From the NCBI GenBank assembly GCA_024704765.1, contig JAKMXF010000300.1:186001-250000 (forward strand): a stretch of 64,000 nt of DNA, given 5' to 3'. The translations under genes and the position numbers were made by a program. The notes beneath the pieces are model-generated. The model made no database searches, was not told where the DNA came from, and was given only the letters and a program-made list of their open reading frames with translations. Within the stretch, counting starts at the first letter, position 1; the number at the start of each line of letters is the position of its first letter. Source of the stretch: Oopsacas minuta (lineage: Eukaryota > Animalia > Porifera). Shown here piece by piece: positions 35,686-54,612 of the stretch.

Positions 35686-36816
35686 ATGCAAGCTATTTTA
35701 GCCTGGGGTAGTAACAATCACTATCAACTAGCTATTTGCAATCAAGATGATCAGTCTATTCCTCATATAACAGCTCCATTTGACAGAACACATGTTTGTA
35801 ATATAGCTAGCATAGGTGGTGGAGGAGCTCACACGTTTATTCAATTCGTTGATGGATCTGTGTATCTTTGTGGTTGGAATAAAGATGGACAAACAGCTGG
35901 TAGTACAATATTTAATGACGTCATTGTACCTACTCCCGTGTTAGGTATCTCCCAGGTGAAGAGGATAGCTTGTGGTTGGACACACACCCTCGTTTGTACG
36001 ATAGAAGGAGTAGTGTTTACCTGGGGCTCTAATACATTCGGGCAATTGGGAACAGATAAAATTGTGGCATACACGAATAAACCTATATTATTAGATCCTA
36101 GTGCGTTTAATGAGGAAGCTATTTCTAGTATAGCTTGTGGTATGAGGCATTCTGGATGTGTTAGTATAACAGGAAGGGTTTATTCATGGGGAAGTGGAAA
36201 TAAAGGACAATTAGGTAGAGAGGGAAACCATGCGATACCTGGAGTATTAGGAGTTGAAATACTGAAGGATACTCATATCATAGATTTATACATGGGGAAT
36301 GGACATAGTTTATTACTGAGTGAAAATAGAAAAATATTTGTGTGTGGTGACAATAGTTACGGACAGTGCGGATTGGAATGTGCATTAGATAAACCGTATA
36401 TTTTAAAGCCAGTTAAATTGGAAAATGTTGATGCAGTTGTTAAGATAGATTGTGGTTGGCAACACAGTTTGTTATTGACAGAGAAAGGAGAAGTATACAG
36501 CTGGGGAAGGTGTGACTATGGACAGCTGGGGAGGGAAGTCATATCTGGAAAGATCAAGGAAGGCAAAGGAACAACTGATATAAAAAGAGTTGGATTGAGT
36601 TGTAAAATTGTAGATATTAAGTGTGGTGCACAACATAGCATTGTATTAAGTGAAAACAGTCAAGTTTATGTCTGGGGATGGAATGAACACGGTATGTGTG
36701 GAAATGGAAAAGAAGAAAACGTCCACAGACCAGTCTTAGTCAATATTAAAGATAAAGTGGTAAGAATTGGATGTGGAAATGGTACAAGTTTTGCAGTAAT
36801 AGAATGTGTTTTGTAA
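35686..36816 (+). CDS. SERGEF: RCC1-repeat protein, SERGEF (DelGEF)-like
   Basis: AWGSN...QL, GGGGAHT, CGWNKDGQ, and repeated CG..H, WG....GQLG blades. Confidence 0.82.
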   Translation: MQAILAWGSNNHYQLAICNQDDQSIPHITAPFDRTHVCNIASIGGGGAHTFIQFVDGSVYLCGWNKDGQTAGSTIFNDVIVPTPVLGISQVKRIACGWTHTLVCTIEGVVFTWGSNTFGQLGTDKIVAYTNKPILLDPSAFNEEAISSIACGMRHSGCVSITGRVYSWGSGNKGQLGREGNHAIPGVLGVEILKDTHIIDLYMGNGHSLLLSENRKIFVCGDNSYGQCGLECALDKPYILKPVKLENVDAVVKIDCGWQHSLLLTEKGEVYSWGRCDYGQLGREVISGKIKEGKGTTDIKRVGLSCKIVDIKCGAQHSIVLSENSQVYVWGWNEHGMCGNGKEENVHRPVLVNIKDKVVRIGCGNGTSFAVIECVL

Positions 36817-48746: not shown

Positions 48747-50291
48747 ATGTCACTTTTCACCAATATCAAACAAAGTAGGTTTGGTATTCCTCACACTTCT
48801 ATAGAGAATAGTAACGGTCTGATAGAGAAGCTAAACTCAAATATATCCCAAACTCATTCACTCACTAATGATGAAACAGGTCTCCCAACTTCACCAAATG
48901 CGGTTTGCTACTCGTATGATGATACAGGGTATATCTCAATTGGTAGTGAAGATGGAGAAGTAAACATTTACGATACACTTCATAATAAACCACTAATCGC
49001 ATGGTCTCCACACAAAAATGCCATACTAGATTTATTATGGGTTCCTTATGTGCCTAAGATAATCACTTGCTCAGTTGATAGAACTGTAATAGTATCAGAT
49101 GCGTGGAGAGGAAAATCTGAAGTATCGTTTGTAGGACATACGAATAGTGTACGGTGTGTAGATCTGAGTAGAGATAATCCTACTGCATTTGCTACAGGAG
49201 GGAGAGATGGCCAAGTAATGCTATGGGATATACGGTATGCAAGGAGAGAGTGTTGTGCTTTCCATCCAATTAATGTAATAGATTCGTTTAAGAAGGAAAC
49301 TACTGAGACTAAACATCATGTTAAAGTAACTTCAGTCAAGTTTATTGGAGATAGAAAGCTAGCTACATGTGCGGATGCTTCTGACGTCATAAAAGTATGG
49401 GACACACGACGTACGTATACGAACTACAAACGTGATCCGTTACCATGGCGCACTCTCCACCCAGCATTCAATCATGCTATAAATAGGGGTTACACATGTT
49501 TGTGTGCAGATGAAGGTTGTACTAGTCTGTATGCTAGTGAGATTAATGGAGTTATTAGAAGGTTTAGTTTGGATTTTAGCTCTAGCTGTGAACAAGGGAA
49601 TTATTATGGACATGAAGGGGGAAGTTTTTATATTCGAAGTTGTTTGAGTCCGGATGGGAAATGGTTGTTGTCTGGTTCTTTAGATGGTAAAGCGCATTTG
49701 TGGGATGTTACCAAGCCTGGTGATCATTTGTACACTTTGGAATGTGGAAGTTCTAGTGAGATTCTCTCAGTAGCATGGTCTCCTTTTAGTATTGACAACT
49801 TGGTGACGTGTTCTGATGGGGATATCACTTTTTGGAATATGAAAATTGTTCCAAAATCAGAGAAAGATAAATCATATAAAATCAAGAAGAATGAAGGAAA
49901 AGTAAAAAGAACGAGAATTCAAAGAAATGTTTATGATATGAACAAATTGAAATCCACTACTCTTGATAATTTCTTTACCAAACGCGAACGACAACCTGAT
50001 TCATTTGATTTATCATCTTCTCATATAATTGAAACACAAATAGATCAACTCAATGAAGCTGGAACACTATCTAGCTCTATGATAGAGGGGATGCAACATT
50101 TAACTGTAGAGAAACCACCAAATTCTGATACTATCAACACACTATCAGAACCTATAATTACCCAACAATCACTCACTAAACCGAAAGGAGAGAAAAGATA
50201 TTTACTGACAAATTATTTTCAACTGACTGGCAAGGGAATGAAGAGGAAACATTCAGAAGATAGCACAGATTTAGTATTGTTTGATACTTAG
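48747..50291 (+). CDS. DTL: Denticleless/CDT2 WD40 substrate receptor of CRL4
   Basis: PHKNAILDLLW, GHTNSVR, FATGGRDGQVMLWDIR, IKVWDTRR and SFYIRSCLSPDG.WLLSGS; C-terminal PIP-like motifs (TLDNFF, LLTNYF). Confidence 0.88.
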   Translation: MSLFTNIKQSRFGIPHTSIENSNGLIEKLNSNISQTHSLTNDETGLPTSPNAVCYSYDDTGYISIGSEDGEVNIYDTLHNKPLIAWSPHKNAILDLLWVPYVPKIITCSVDRTVIVSDAWRGKSEVSFVGHTNSVRCVDLSRDNPTAFATGGRDGQVMLWDIRYARRECCAFHPINVIDSFKKETTETKHHVKVTSVKFIGDRKLATCADASDVIKVWDTRRTYTNYKRDPLPWRTLHPAFNHAINRGYTCLCADEGCTSLYASEINGVIRRFSLDFSSSCEQGNYYGHEGGSFYIRSCLSPDGKWLLSGSLDGKAHLWDVTKPGDHLYTLECGSSSEILSVAWSPFSIDNLVTCSDGDITFWNMKIVPKSEKDKSYKIKKNEGKVKRTRIQRNVYDMNKLKSTTLDNFFTKRERQPDSFDLSSSHIIETQIDQLNEAGTLSSSMIEGMQHLTVEKPPNSDTINTLSEPIITQQSLTKPKGEKRYLLTNYFQLTGKGMKRKHSEDSTDLVLFDT

Positions 50292-50386
50292 AATGTTAGC
50301 CAAAATATCACTCAATTATTTATTTTCCAAGAATATATTTCAAAGTTATAGAAATAAGAGTTTATCATACAAATCTGTAAAATACA

Positions 50387-51427
50387 TTAAAATCCATGGA
50401 ATGAGACAGCACTATCATCTTCAGTAATATTCTATAAAAATATAAAATATAGTTTAATTGTGTACAATCGAGTCAAAATGGTCAGGTTTACCTTCCCAAG
50501 CCCACATTCCATGATTAGGATGAGAAATGTTCATTCTTAGATACCAACTATCATTGTAAGGCCATTCTTTCTTTGTATTACAGTCTAGCATTAACATAAT
50601 GCAGTTACAGATGTAGACTATTGTCATTTCTGGACGATAACCTTCATACAGTATTTCAAGACACATGTGACCGTTGCTGTATATGTGAGGATGCATTGGT
50701 ACATGGCCTGGAATAAATGTAATCTAATGGGAGGTAATTGTAATACATTTATCAGCAAACTTGTTGATACTTATACTATCAACTCCTGTTATATCGCAAG
50801 GATCCCTATGATTGGGTATATCAACGTATCCGCTTCGATATAACGAGAATTGACTATACTTAAACTCACTGTAGGTGCTTTAGAGGGATAATTTTCATTG
50901 AAAATAATTTTTAGTTTGAACTTTTCGCCATTATAGATGGTTTCTAAATAAATATACTAATAATAATATTGATACGACGTAAATCATTTAAGATTATTAT
51001 TTCTAACTACTTACCAACTGCTCCATCCATATCCACAATCCATCTACAGAGACGATATGAATAAACTTTTTTCTGAAACACACATATTTACTTACTCTTT
51101 GAGGTTAGATCCATCGAATGAAGGGTCCATTCTCATGTTACTAGGTGCGTCCTCGGTTAAATGCTTCAATTCTCTAATTATTCGTTGTTTACCCTGTAGT
51201 TTACTAATATCCGTTACTTCTTTTGTACGTGCACTACTGGTCTGTTTATCTACGATAATCTGAAAAACAAATACGTAATTACATACACATCTATATTATC
51301 TATGTATTTTACTCATCAGAATTTTGCTTACCTCGATTGGAGTAGTTTCTTTTACGCTATCCCTGTTGTAGCATTTTGGCAGAGATTTAGACTTAGATTT
51401 TGTAGTTTTGGACTCTACACAACCCAT
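50387..51427 (-). CDS. UBE2W-like ubiquitin-conjugating enzyme, paralog A, with N-terminal MGC extension, 6 exons, about 208 aa
   Basis: Exons 51427-51332, 51259-51096, 51043-51015, 50943-50870, 50723-50492 and 50418-50387 (last exon least certain), GT-AG with consistent phases. WIVDMDGA, YNGEKFKL.I.F..NYP, HPHIYSNGHMCLEIL (catalytic Cys). Confidence 0.8.
50774..50858. mobile_element. Pogo-like MITE, family A-related mini copy in intron 4 of UBE2W-like A
   Basis: TA-ctatcaactcctgttatatcg ... tcgatataacgagaattgacta-TA. Confidence 0.72.
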
Positions 51428-51864
51428 CAGGAGTATAAATTAAAATTTAAGGCTAGATAATAATAACGAATAGCTATAAATTAAAGCTCGATACATTACG
51501 AGTATTGTATATGCCACGAACAACTGTAATCTACAGTTTTTCAATCGGAGTATAAATTATCCTCTCTGTGCTAATGCTGGAAAGAATTCAGGCCTAATAA
51601 CTGCAGTCGGTAAGTACCGTTATTATTCAGATATATATAATCTAGATTATGTATAATAGCATTACGTTAGTATATATTTTGGGGTAAATACTTATCTTAC
51701 TACTGGAAATGTTCTAATTATAAAACTATCATATTGATGCTAATTAAAAAGGTTTATTCATTCCCTGATACACTAATTTTTAACATGCATATGAAACATA
51801 TGAAAAGATAATGAGATTGAACAACAGTAGAATCTTTTCCTTGATGGAGTTTGAAGGGAAACTA

Positions 51865-52665
51865 TTAGTATTCATCTAAATGAGAAGAATTTGATCATAT
51901 AAACAGGAATTACAAAAAAATTTAAATGAATGTACTCACCTTCATATATCCACGAAGTGTTTTTCGGATTTCTGTCTACCCTTCTTAAGCTGTAATATGA
52001 ATCTCCTCGTGGCACAACCTTATTTTTATTCTTATTTAGCATCTGTGTAACACAGAGACAAATGTATACAATTGTCATTTCCGGTCGATACCCTGCATAT
52101 AATATTTCTAAGCAGATATGTCCATTACTGTATATGTGTGGATGTACAGGAACATGACCTGATACGAACTTGACCTATAAAGCAGGAATTACGTTTATAT
52201 GATATTTTGTGAGTATTTACTTAAGGCTTACAATAGGGGAAACTTGAGGATAATTATCTGTGAATTCAAATTGAAGTTTGAACTTTTCACCTTCATACAT
52301 TGTACCTTGTATACCATTCATGTTCACTGTCCACCTACAAAAAGTAATTTGTTATACGATCGATTTCTCCTAAATAGCTACAGTGGAACCTCGTTAATAC
52401 GAACTCCAACGGATGATCAATATGTGTTCGCTTCACGAGTAATAACAACTCATTGAAGGGACCTGATTTTGTGTAAATATTGGTTCGTCTTATCTGGAAA
52501 TTCTTATTAACGAAGTTCCACTGTAATTTCTTACTTGAAAATATTGGAGTCATCCAAGTTCTCTAAGTTTATATGAGCAGGAGCAGAATTGATGAAATAT
52601 TTGAGTTCGTGATTTATCCTAGACGCTCCTGACAAACCACTTGCTGGGAAATCTATTTGTGCCAT
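51865..52665 (-). CDS. UBE2W-like ubiquitin-conjugating enzyme, paralog B, 4 exons, about 159 aa
   Basis: Exons 52665-52535, 52334-52232, 52174-51940 and 51875-51865. RINHELK, WTVNMNGIQGTMYEGEKFKLQFEF..NYP..SP, HPHIYSNGHICLEIL, NPKNTSWIYEDEY. Confidence 0.85.
52379..52525. mobile_element. Tigger-like MITE, family D, in intron 1 of UBE2W-like B
   Basis: TA-cagtggaacctcgttaata ... tattaacgaagttccactg-TA: 19-bp TIRs with 1 mismatch. Confidence 0.85.
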
Positions 52666-52777
52666 ATTATTCTCACAATTAAATTCTACTATTAGGGTTT
52701 ATATATCATTTCTGTGTGTTGTATAGAGATGATATGAATATTACGCAATTCAGTGTTAATATTAGTCACGTATTTTA

Positions 52778-52850
52778 TGCTAACTTATTTATACTCATTC
52801 AATCTTTTTTGCTAACTTATTTATATTCATTCAACTTTTTTTGCTAATTT
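52778..52850. repeat. 32-bp tandem repeat, about 2.3 copies
   Basis: Unit tgctaacttatttata(c/t)tcattcaa... starts at 52778, 52810 and 52842. Confidence 0.85.
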
Positions 52851-53424
52851 GTAATGCTCTAGTTTCACTACGTTATGTCGTTCAAACTGCCCTTTTGTCC
52901 TGTAGCAAACTGTCCGTGAGGCAGTGTAATAGTAGCGAAGCGTCCATATCAATACAATCTTCATAAGTATAGTAGAACCTCTACAAGTGGGAGGTTGGAC
53001 GACGAATCTCCTGATAACCCCCCCCACCATTCCCCATTTATACTTTCAGTACAAATGGCCTTTAAACAGAGATTTTTGGGTCAAAACTCCATATATTCTA
53101 TATAATTTCATATACAGGGTTGAATCATTATTGTGAGGAGTGAGGACACATATTGTATTCAGCTATTACAAGTCCATTGTGTTCTATTTCCATATTTTTT
53201 ACTGTGTAATCACAATTATTCAGCTTAGAGTAGGCACAGTATACTGATATCCTGTTTCTAAAAGATTGTTGATCAGGGTATATAGATAATGTTTGCATTT
53301 CAACTTGTCGAAACCTTTGTAGTATATGTACCTATTCACACTCAATAATGCATATTATCTGTAAACAGTTGAAATTGCAATCAACACTCAATTAATTTCC
53401 CAGAATTGGTCTTATGGTATATTC

Positions 53425-54612
53425 ATGATCGGAAAAAGTGGAAGATTATTTTCCTTTCGGAAGTTATATTGCTGTATATTTGCCATTTTTTTAATTTTAA
53501 GTGTCTTGTTGGTCATTTTACATATTCAATTCAGTCCATACAATTATAATTTGGCTACGATTCAGAAACATTATGAGGAAGAAACAGTTCAAAACGTGGC
53601 ATTAATCAAAGTTCATAAAGCAGCAAGTTCTACACTAGCTAATATCCTATTTCGCTATGGATTAGCAAATAATCTCACGTTTCTTTTACCTAAGAATGAA
53701 GAGCTTGCACAATTTTGGCCATACCCTATTACGTCATCAAACGTCATTCAAAACTGTCAGGATAAATTCAATATACTAAATGTTCATACTATATTCTCGG
53801 GACGAAGTAATATTAATTTATTCATGCTTTCTACTACCAAAATAATTGCCATTCTAAGACATCCAGCTACACAATTGAAATCTGGATTCAAATATTATGG
53901 AGTTTCGAGTATATACCCAGACGGAGCATTATCTTTCAATGAGTTTATTGATGATCCAGTTAGCCATCTTAAAAAGATGTATGAACTTAAAAATTTGTTA
54001 TGGAATGGTATGTCAGTTGACCTTGGATTAATGAACAATAAAAATATTCCATGGCTCATAACGAAGAGTGATATTATTTCTAATCACGTCCTGAGAACGT
54101 ATGTTTATGACTTTTTGACGTCGATAGAAGAATCAATTGATTTGATGCTTATATCAGAATATTTTGAGGAATCTCTAGTTCTTTTGAAGAGATTATTAAA
54201 TTGGAATTTGGAAGATATGGCATTTTTCTCGCTAAATAAAGCGGTGGAATCTGTCACGATTGACCAGTTTACAGATGCTGAGATGGACAAGATTATTGAA
54301 TGGAATTTTATCGATTATTTGCTGTACACACGAATGCTAAACAAACTTTTTCAACAAATATATTATTCTGATGTTGACATAAACAAAGATGTTATAGAGT
54401 TAAAATCAATAAATTCTTACTTCAAAGAATATTGTCTAGCGGAAGTTAAGATGGATCCAAGGTTATACGGAGCTGTCCCGATTCTAGGTTACAAATTGAA
54501 TAGAGAAGGGGAAATGGTTGAGAAATGCAAACTGATGACTACTACTGAACTGAAGAATATACGTGAAGCAAGGGCACATATGAAAGAGTTATGTAAATCT
54601 GGAACAGAATAA
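53425..54612 (+). CDS. GAL3ST: Galactose-3-O-sulfotransferase family, type II Golgi protein
   Basis: N-terminal TM, 5'-PSB motif LIKVHKAASSTLANILFRYG, ILRHP..QLKSGF.YY, DLMLISEYFEESLVLLKRLLNW and WN.ID..LY. Confidence 0.9.
   Translation: MIGKSGRLFSFRKLYCCIFAIFLILSVLLVILHIQFSPYNYNLATIQKHYEEETVQNVALIKVHKAASSTLANILFRYGLANNLTFLLPKNEELAQFWPYPITSSNVIQNCQDKFNILNVHTIFSGRSNINLFMLSTTKIIAILRHPATQLKSGFKYYGVSSIYPDGALSFNEFIDDPVSHLKKMYELKNLLWNGMSVDLGLMNNKNIPWLITKSDIISNHVLRTYVYDFLTSIEESIDLMLISEYFEESLVLLKRLLNWNLEDMAFFSLNKAVESVTIDQFTDAEMDKIIEWNFIDYLLYTRMLNKLFQQIYYSDVDINKDVIELKSINSYFKEYCLAEVKMDPRLYGAVPILGYKLNREGEMVEKCKLMTTTELKNIREARAHMKELCKSGTE

Follow-up and report, generated by a model that had tools for sequence, protein, structure and literature searches.

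A UBE2W-family ubiquitin-conjugating enzyme with a putative N-terminal acylation signal, encoded in a tandem gene pair of Oopsacas minuta

Introduction

Ubiquitin-conjugating enzymes (E2s) are usually soluble, and their recruitment to membranes relies on transmembrane tails, receptors or lipidated partners. The membrane-bound members include the tail-anchored Ubc6, UBE2J1 and UBE2J2, together with Ubc7, which is held by Cue1, and Pex4, which is held by Pex22. Lipids also serve ubiquitination by way of other components. In plants, group VI E2s are brought to the plasma membrane by the MUB proteins, which are prenylated adaptors with a ubiquitin fold, and the RING E3 ligases ZNRF1/2, RNF11 and MGRN1 are N-myristoylated. 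The signals of the SH4 type, found in Lck, Fyn, Lyn and Yes and in G-alpha-i/o, combine Met-Gly-Cys with Ser or Cys at position 6, Lys or Arg at position 7 and nearby basic residues; Cys3 is the residue that is palmitoylated in Src-family kinases and G-alpha-i/o.

UBE2W is an E2 that has been reported to ubiquitinate its own N-terminus. It has a distinctive active site and acts on the alpha-amino groups of disordered N-termini, in the recognition of which its C-terminal tail assists (PMC4692089). Here we describe two tandem E2 genes, A and B, in a 64,000-nucleotide stretch of the Oopsacas minuta contig JAKMXF010000300.1 (the window, to which all coordinates refer unless stated otherwise). Judging from the gene models, the conservation of the locus and the fit to known acylation rules, we estimate a probability of roughly 0.66 that the product of gene A is a 201-residue UBE2W-family E2 tethered by its own N-terminus to the cytosolic face of a membrane.

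Results

Structure and splicing of the tandem E2 genes

The window, with a GC content of 35% and very short introns, was read on its minus strand over 49800-54200. Genes A and B both lie on this strand, and they are flanked by a WD40-repeat gene and a galactose-3-O-sulfotransferase-like gene. Assembled contigs from four public runs of a single study (X1-X4; the library type of X4 is unrecorded) were compared with the window over 50000-53000. Runs X1-X3 include the introns at a contiguous and even depth of ~100x, as expected for genomic DNA, while X4 is of very uneven depth and is the only run with GT..AG skips on the minus strand, which fall at the introns of A and B. On these grounds we take X4 to be RNA-derived. 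Gene A was resolved into six coding exons with GT..AG borders throughout and 603 coding nucleotides (201 codons). The features of both genes are as follows.

51442-51440, minus strand: in-frame TAA, five codons 5' of the gene A ATG
51427-51332, minus strand: gene A exon 1, coding part; 96 nt, 32 codons, MGCVESKTTKSKSKSLPKCYNRDSVKETTPIE; putative acylation signal and first part of the tether; read directly
51331-51260, minus strand: gene A intron 1; 72 nt, GT..AG, phase 0; skipped in X4 contigs
51259-51096, minus strand: gene A exon 2; remainder of the tether, IIVDKQTSSARTKEVTD, then E2 helix 1, ISKLQGKQRIIRELKHL...; the 51096/51043 joint is seen in X4
51043-51015, minus strand: gene A exon 3; 29 nt, (E)WIVDMDGAV; both borders backed by an X4 joint and a loose contig end
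50943-50870, minus strand: gene A exon 4; ETIYNGEKFKLKIIFNENYPSKAPT; X4 loose ends at 50944 and 50723
50723-50492, minus strand: gene A exon 5; catalytic part with HPH-x7-Cys and UBE2W-type C-terminal region
50431-50421, minus strand: gene A exon 6, coding part; ends the protein with (E)YY and contains the TGA stop (50423-50421); consistent with the 50492/50431 joint, X4 has a loose end at 50433
52665-51865, minus strand: paralog B; 159 codons in exons 52665-52535, 52334-52232, 52174-51940 and 51875-51865; all three joints in X4

The separate 96-nt first exon with Gly2, Cys3, Ser6 and Lys7 that had been described from the letters of the window is present on the minus strand at 51427-51332. Its product starts MGCVESKTTKSKSKSLPK..., which is Met-Gly-Cys-x-x-Ser-Lys (MGCVESK), and the exon ends on the donor GTAAGC; exon 2 begins at 51259 after TTTTTCAG, in phase 0. 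Since the in-frame TAA lies just upstream and no other ATG occurs between it and 51427, the ATG at 51427 is the first usable start. As exon 2 contains no in-frame ATG ahead of helix 1, the gene must have a coding exon further upstream; a start inside exon 2 was rejected on this ground and because a stop within intron 1 shuts the reading frame.

The X4 contigs show skips in gene A at 51332/51259 (three contigs), at 51096/51043 (two contigs) and, as a minor form, at 51015/50956, and loose contig ends fit the joints 51015/50943, 50870/50723 and 50492/50431. All three introns of paralog B are skipped as well. The exon 1-2 junction, which the preliminary description had singled out for confirmation in RNA, was thereby seen, in frame, in three assembled contigs of one run. 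The stated depth of the contigs with the exon 1-2 joint is low, 53 versus 2458 for the exon 2-3 joint, and gene A may have another, commoner 5' end. Transcript ends and isoform ratios are unreadable from the X4 contigs.

At the 3' end, exon 5 closes on a phase-1 donor (50492|GT), which joins the acceptor at 50431 to give the C-terminus ...WAWE-EYY-stop. Gene A of a related taxon (L001, below) has the same EYY-stop ending. The 3' UTR extends to an AATAAA at 50324-50319. The gene had earlier been drawn to end at 50387, which is incorrect: the stop codon is the TGA at 50423-50421, and 50387 falls in the 3' UTR. A C-terminus compatible with an end at 50387 would need a non-GT donor or an unsupported acceptor, and it was rejected in favour of EYY-stop, which both the RNA contigs and L001 favour.

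Several further observations concern the transcripts of this region. Gene A and the convergent plus-strand WD40 gene end ~130 nt apart (WD40 stop at 50291, A stop at 50421), and with the A polyadenylation signal at 50324-50319 their 3' UTRs lie almost end to end or overlap. A single X4 contig covers 50000-50407 across the two convergent ends. A second acceptor lies 13 nt 5' of the exon 4 acceptor (50944-50956, minus strand) and is used at the 51015/50956 joint in one X4 contig of depth 16. This joint shifts the frame and meets a stop after eight codons, and the resulting transcript is probably a minor, unproductive form. Upstream of the start codon, a low-depth X4 contig (150) covers 51426-51791 and ends ~31 letters (one assembly word) short of 51455; exon 1 is much deeper. 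A pyrimidine-rich tract ends in AG at 51454-51453 on the minus strand. This AG could serve as an acceptor for cis- or trans-splicing in the 5' UTR, or the contig end could be an allelic branch. The start codon would be unaffected by any acceptor at 51454-51453, since the in-frame TAA lies downstream of that point. A spliced leader has been reported for the glass sponge Aphrocallistes vastus (PMC10282587).

The tandem pair is kept in three further taxa

An exhaustive HMMER search, from which the UBE2W family members discussed below were also taken, returned short ORF fragments, two of which (P0001 and P0006) are 83-94% identical to exon 5 and one of which (P0002) is B-like. The contigs that carry such fragments belong to metagenome or run assemblies and fall into three taxa besides the window: L001-L005 (98-100% alike, polymorphic for N4/K4), L006 and L007. 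Synteny between these contigs and the window extends beyond 10 kb, with a common order of phosphagen kinase, sulfotransferase, B, A, WD40, NUDIX, NHL-like, V-SNARE and Ras-like genes, and the B-then-A tandem is kept in all three taxa. The neighbouring WD40 gene is only 60-64% identical between taxa and dS of the E2 exons is saturated (0.7 to >2), which together place the taxa far apart. A search for orthologs in other glass sponges had been proposed as a check; gene A with a Met-Gly-Cys start was found at the syntenic locus of each of the three further taxa.

Introns vary among these loci. L001 (5896-6204) has no intron between its exon 4 and 5 equivalents, where the window (50724-50869), L006 and L007 have one, and a gene A intron that splits WIVDMDGAV|ETIYNGEKF (50944-51014 in the window) is absent from B. 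Within intron 1 of B, a short stretch ...GTTCGTATTAACGAGGTTCCACTGTAG... (52379-52413) has ~10x the flanking depth in the DNA runs and many loose ends, and a near-identical stretch occurs in a gene A intron of L006 (5720-5770); it probably belongs to a small interspersed repeat family common to these taxa.

The E2 core is most closely related to UBE2W

In exon-by-exon searches, exon 5 (ITFIPGHVPMHPHIYSNGHMCLEIL...) exceeds the gathering score of Pfam UQ_con (PF00179) with an E value of 4e-8, and the same family is matched by exon 2 of paralog B at 5.8e-7. Compared with all solved structures, exon 5 matches UBE2W best (2mt6, 2.3e-13; 8a58, 1.1e-11); two further top chains are generically named, and chains named for UBE2D, RAD6 and UBC9 follow at 7e-4 or worse. 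The alignment with residues 75-139 of 2mt6 is gap-free and runs through the UBE2W-specific C-terminal region. UBE2W family members from the HMMER search align exon by exon to A and B (tblastn) and nowhere else in the window. A profile built from these members retrieves 3011 proteins, and the informative names among the matches listed are UBE2W or 'N-terminal E2 ubiquitin-conjugating enzyme'. The HPH-x7-C of exon 5 reads HPHIYSNGHMC and does not vary in either gene of the four taxa or in the family alignment. The earlier assignment of a UBE2W-like core with HPH-x7-C is thus upheld by the domain match, the best structural matches and the family profile.

Identity of the gene A catalytic exon to human UBE2W is only ~40-45%, and the C-terminal region has diverged. 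Canonical UBE2W carries the pattern P-x-D/N-x-S-F/W-Y...NP-K...W-x-[FWY]-H-D-D, and near the C-terminus it reads ...NPKKTKWWYHDDTC; B retains NPKNTSWIYEDEY and A has ...HPNHGMWAWEEYY. The C-terminal region of A appears to be related to that of UBE2W in an altered form.

The history of the pair was followed in the catalytic exon. Across taxa this exon is 91-94% identical in A versus 70-86% in B, and pairwise dN is 0.03-0.055 for A versus 0.08-0.24 for B. In a tree of the four A sequences, the four B sequences and the family, which has 77 usable columns and is to be read with caution, A and B form one clade (SH-aLRT 95) and A forms a clade of its own (97). The A stem measures 0.89 and the A tips <0.04, B tips measure 0.02-0.19, and the A+B clade lies 0.83 away from other UBE2W proteins in the same 77-column tree. 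The single A+B clade argues for a duplication specific to this lineage, and the duplication is older than the split of the four taxa. By the same comparisons, A then changed fast and has since been under tighter constraint than B.

Paralog B, the upstream tandem copy, starts MAQIDFPASGLSGASRINHELKYF (MAQIDFP) directly at the E2 core, and no upstream coding or acylation exon of B was found. Its orthologs in L001, L006 and L007 likewise start MA(Q/N)(I/F)DFP or similar at the core, with no MG start. The preliminary description was therefore right that B lacks the exon, and this holds in the three other taxa. With the exon absent from B and from all sampled outgroup UBE2W proteins, it was most parsimoniously gained in A once the genes had duplicated, as had been suggested, with the qualification that both events are old and precede the four-taxon split. 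Exon 2 of A extends 10-24 codons further 5' than the start codon of B, which suggests that formerly untranslated sequence was taken into the A reading frame.

This divergence bears on what gene A does at a membrane. The protein might be lipid-anchored and have a diverged core that lacks the alpha-amine specificity of UBE2W, so that it modifies lysines or other nucleophiles near the membrane or acts mainly as a non-catalytic partner. The long A stem, the distance of the A+B clade from other UBE2W proteins and the low identity to the human enzyme speak in favour of such a loss, as does the alteration of the very tail that in UBE2W aids recognition of N-termini (PMC4692089). However, A retains HPH and the catalytic Cys and aligns without gaps along the UBE2W-specific C-terminal region, its very low dN is that of a constrained enzyme, and UBE2W is clearly its best match among all solved E2s. 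We consider the loss of UBE2W chemistry unlikely as an account of the whole gene. The long branch and the C-terminal differences nonetheless suggest that the substrate chemistry of A may have shifted, and we would give even odds that alpha-amine specificity is retained.

A putative acylation signal is conserved at the start of gene A

In L001, L006 and L007, gene A starts with a separate exon that ends on a phase-0 donor, and intron 1 is at the same place as in the window. The N-termini are as follows.

Window: MGCVESK
L001: MGCNDSK (allele MGCKDSK)
L006: MGCKESR
L007: MGCKGSK

Gene A therefore starts MGC-x-x-S-[KR] in all four taxa. The synonymous codons differ (GGT, GGG or GGC for Gly2, TGT or TGC for Cys3, and TCC, TCA or TCT for Ser6), indicating that the signal is conserved at the level of the protein. 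Cys3 is invariant in 5/5 sequences, with both of its codons in use, and positions 4-5 vary freely, even within one taxon (N4/K4). The invariant columns of the aligned exon 1 are M1, G2, C3, S6, S13 and K14, at an overall identity of ~35%, and beyond the heptad the exon is barely alignable. Taken together, the MGCxxS[KR] heptad is under purifying selection across four deeply diverged taxa.

What follows the heptad is less uniform. A second small conserved motif, [SP][KT]SK, occupies residues 11-14 of exon 1. The net charge of residues 2-20 is +4, +1, +3 and +4 in the four taxa, with L001 weak at +1; the Lys/Ser-rich stretch previously noted behind the signal is thus there in part, its Lys-rich portion being only partly conserved. 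Between the signal and helix 1, each of the four taxa has 46-54 residues (in L006, if the second of two in-frame donors is used), of which 72-78% are polar or disorder-type. No sequence is conserved along this stretch, which behaves as a flexible tether would.

At the pattern level, the start of gene A fits the N-myristoyltransferase consensus (PROSITE PS00008 form) through G2, C3, S6 and K7, as do L001, L006 (with R7) and L007. This form of the pattern has Gly2, a residue 3 that is not charged, aromatic or Pro, one of Ser, Thr, Ala, Gly, Cys or Asn at position 6 and no Pro at position 7, where Lys or Arg is favourable. Gly2 stands at the translational start, given the TAA five codons upstream and the joining of exon 1 to exon 2 in the RNA contigs. 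By chance, 7 of the 681 ATG-initiated ORFs of at least 25 codons in the window (~1%) fit the loose PROSITE myristoylation pattern, so a single match is weak evidence and the conservation across species carries the case. The positions kept are those read by N-myristoyltransferase (Gly2, an uncharged residue 3, Ser6 and a basic residue 7) together with Cys3. The proposed consensus therefore stands as a pattern, with its key positions kept in four taxa. On this basis the gene A product is very probably myristoylated, and additional palmitoylation is probable, if less so. Elsewhere in the window, an ORF start at 36292 on the plus strand, MGNGHSLLLSENRKIFVCGDNSYGQCG..., also fits the myristoylation pattern; by eye, it looks like an RCC1-type repeat. 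Unusual domains with N-terminal acylation signals may be more widespread in this genome.

The extension could also be functional and provide no stable lipid anchor, serving as a glycine N-degron, as a myristoyl switch that can be reversed, or, on a disordered regulatory arm, as a motif for docking or phosphorylation. Its lipidation is backed by a pattern match that ~1% of ORF starts fit by chance, the tether is disordered, and the conserved [SP][KT]SK hints at other interactions. Yet the residues kept are exactly those that the acylation enzymes need, Gly2, Cys3, Ser6 and Lys/Arg7, and positions 4-5 are free, as would be expected of a dual acylation signal like those of Src kinases and G-alpha proteins; this makes an extension without a stable anchor distinctly unlikely. 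That exon 1 is non-coding, its motif a chance ORF in the 5' UTR or the product of a mis-joined model, is hardly credible: the junction contigs are of low depth and the contig break near 51426-51455 suggests another event at the 5' end, but the phase-0 joint was observed, exon 2 lacks an ATG ahead of helix 1, the start codon closely follows an in-frame stop, and the exon, its phase and the Met-Gly-Cys start are kept in four taxa at saturated dS.

Acylated starts among UBE2W-family proteins and in the literature

The N-termini of 258 UBE2W-family proteins were surveyed, a sample made up of the best 150 representatives for exon 5 and 108 of the 3011 proteins retrieved in the profile search. None of the 258 has a Met-Gly-Cys start. 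An MG start occurs in nine, of which only one agrees with the loose myristoylation pattern; this protein is a 91-residue fragment that looks like intron read-through and was set aside, leaving no credible acylated start. Likewise, neither a lipidated UBE2W nor an acylated E2 of any other kind was found described in the full-text literature searched, where subscription papers are under-covered. The earlier remark that no lipid-anchored UBE2W is known agrees with both surveys. Gene A would combine a known enzyme subfamily with a known targeting signal in a way that is undescribed in the literature searched.

Discussion

The data best fit a gene A product that is a UBE2W-family E2 held at the membrane by its own N-terminus. 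The acylation steps proposed here follow the established rules for Src-family kinases and G-alpha-i/o. By analogy with these proteins, methionine aminopeptidase would remove the initiator Met and expose Gly2, which N-myristoyltransferase would acylate during translation; a DHHC enzyme would then palmitoylate Cys3 at the membrane, with nearby Lys residues aiding binding. The flexible tether of ~50 residues would keep the active site within ~5-15 nm of the bilayer. There, the E1-charged enzyme may work with RING or U-box ligases to prime proteins close to the membrane, attaching the first ubiquitin to the free alpha-amino group of a disordered N-terminus. With Gly2 acylated, its own alpha-amine would be blocked and self-ubiquitination at the N-terminus would be impossible.

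If this is true, gene A represents a new way of confining ubiquitin priming to a membrane surface: an E2 with its own putative myristoyl/palmitoyl signal, from the one subfamily that targets protein N-termini. Two N-terminal modification systems would meet in one protein, the acylated Gly2 shielding the enzyme from N-terminal ubiquitination. The pair would also offer a clean natural example of neofunctionalisation by an added targeting signal, in which duplication, exon gain and a burst of change were followed by tighter constraint than on the parent-like copy. The design is simple, MGCxxSK and a linker on UBE2W, and is testable in any cell system. The reach of the finding is limited in that it is confined so far to one poorly tractable animal lineage. 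A bolder version, to which we assign only a slender chance, holds that the main constrained UBE2W of glass sponges is A rather than B, and that A is the first known E2 to be lipidated directly, with a bilayer-close active site that would modify targets beyond those of canonical UBE2W: the N-termini of membrane-embedded or membrane-bound proteins in syncytial tissue, or amine lipid head groups such as phosphatidylethanolamine.

The closest relative by sequence is human UBE2W (UBC16; 2MT6, 8A58), with which A shares the UBC fold, HPH in place of HPN and the catalytic Cys after a further seven residues; the non-canonical C-terminal region is colinear in the two enzymes and altered in A. Unlike the human enzyme, which starts at the core, A has ~50 extra N-terminal residues that begin with MGCxxSK, and a tail that reads WAWEEYY. 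In its N-terminal layout, A is like the SH4-type proteins, where a disordered 'unique' segment separates the Met-Gly-Cys signal from the folded domain. In contrast to the SH4 kinases and G proteins, the signal of A sits on an E2; sequence kinship is limited to the motif, and the signal is accordingly a convergent use of the SH4 type.

In its proposed placement, A resembles Ubc6, UBE2J1 and UBE2J2, Ubc7 with Cue1, and Pex4 with Pex22, all of which have an E2 active site confined to one membrane surface. Those enzymes belong to other subfamilies and depend on a C-terminal transmembrane helix or a separate receptor, whereas A would depend on putative N-terminal fatty acylation of the E2 itself. 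The MUB proteins and the myristoylated E3s likewise use a lipid to bring the ubiquitination machinery to membranes, as is proposed for A; their lipid is on the adaptor or the E3, and in gene A it is predicted to be on the E2.
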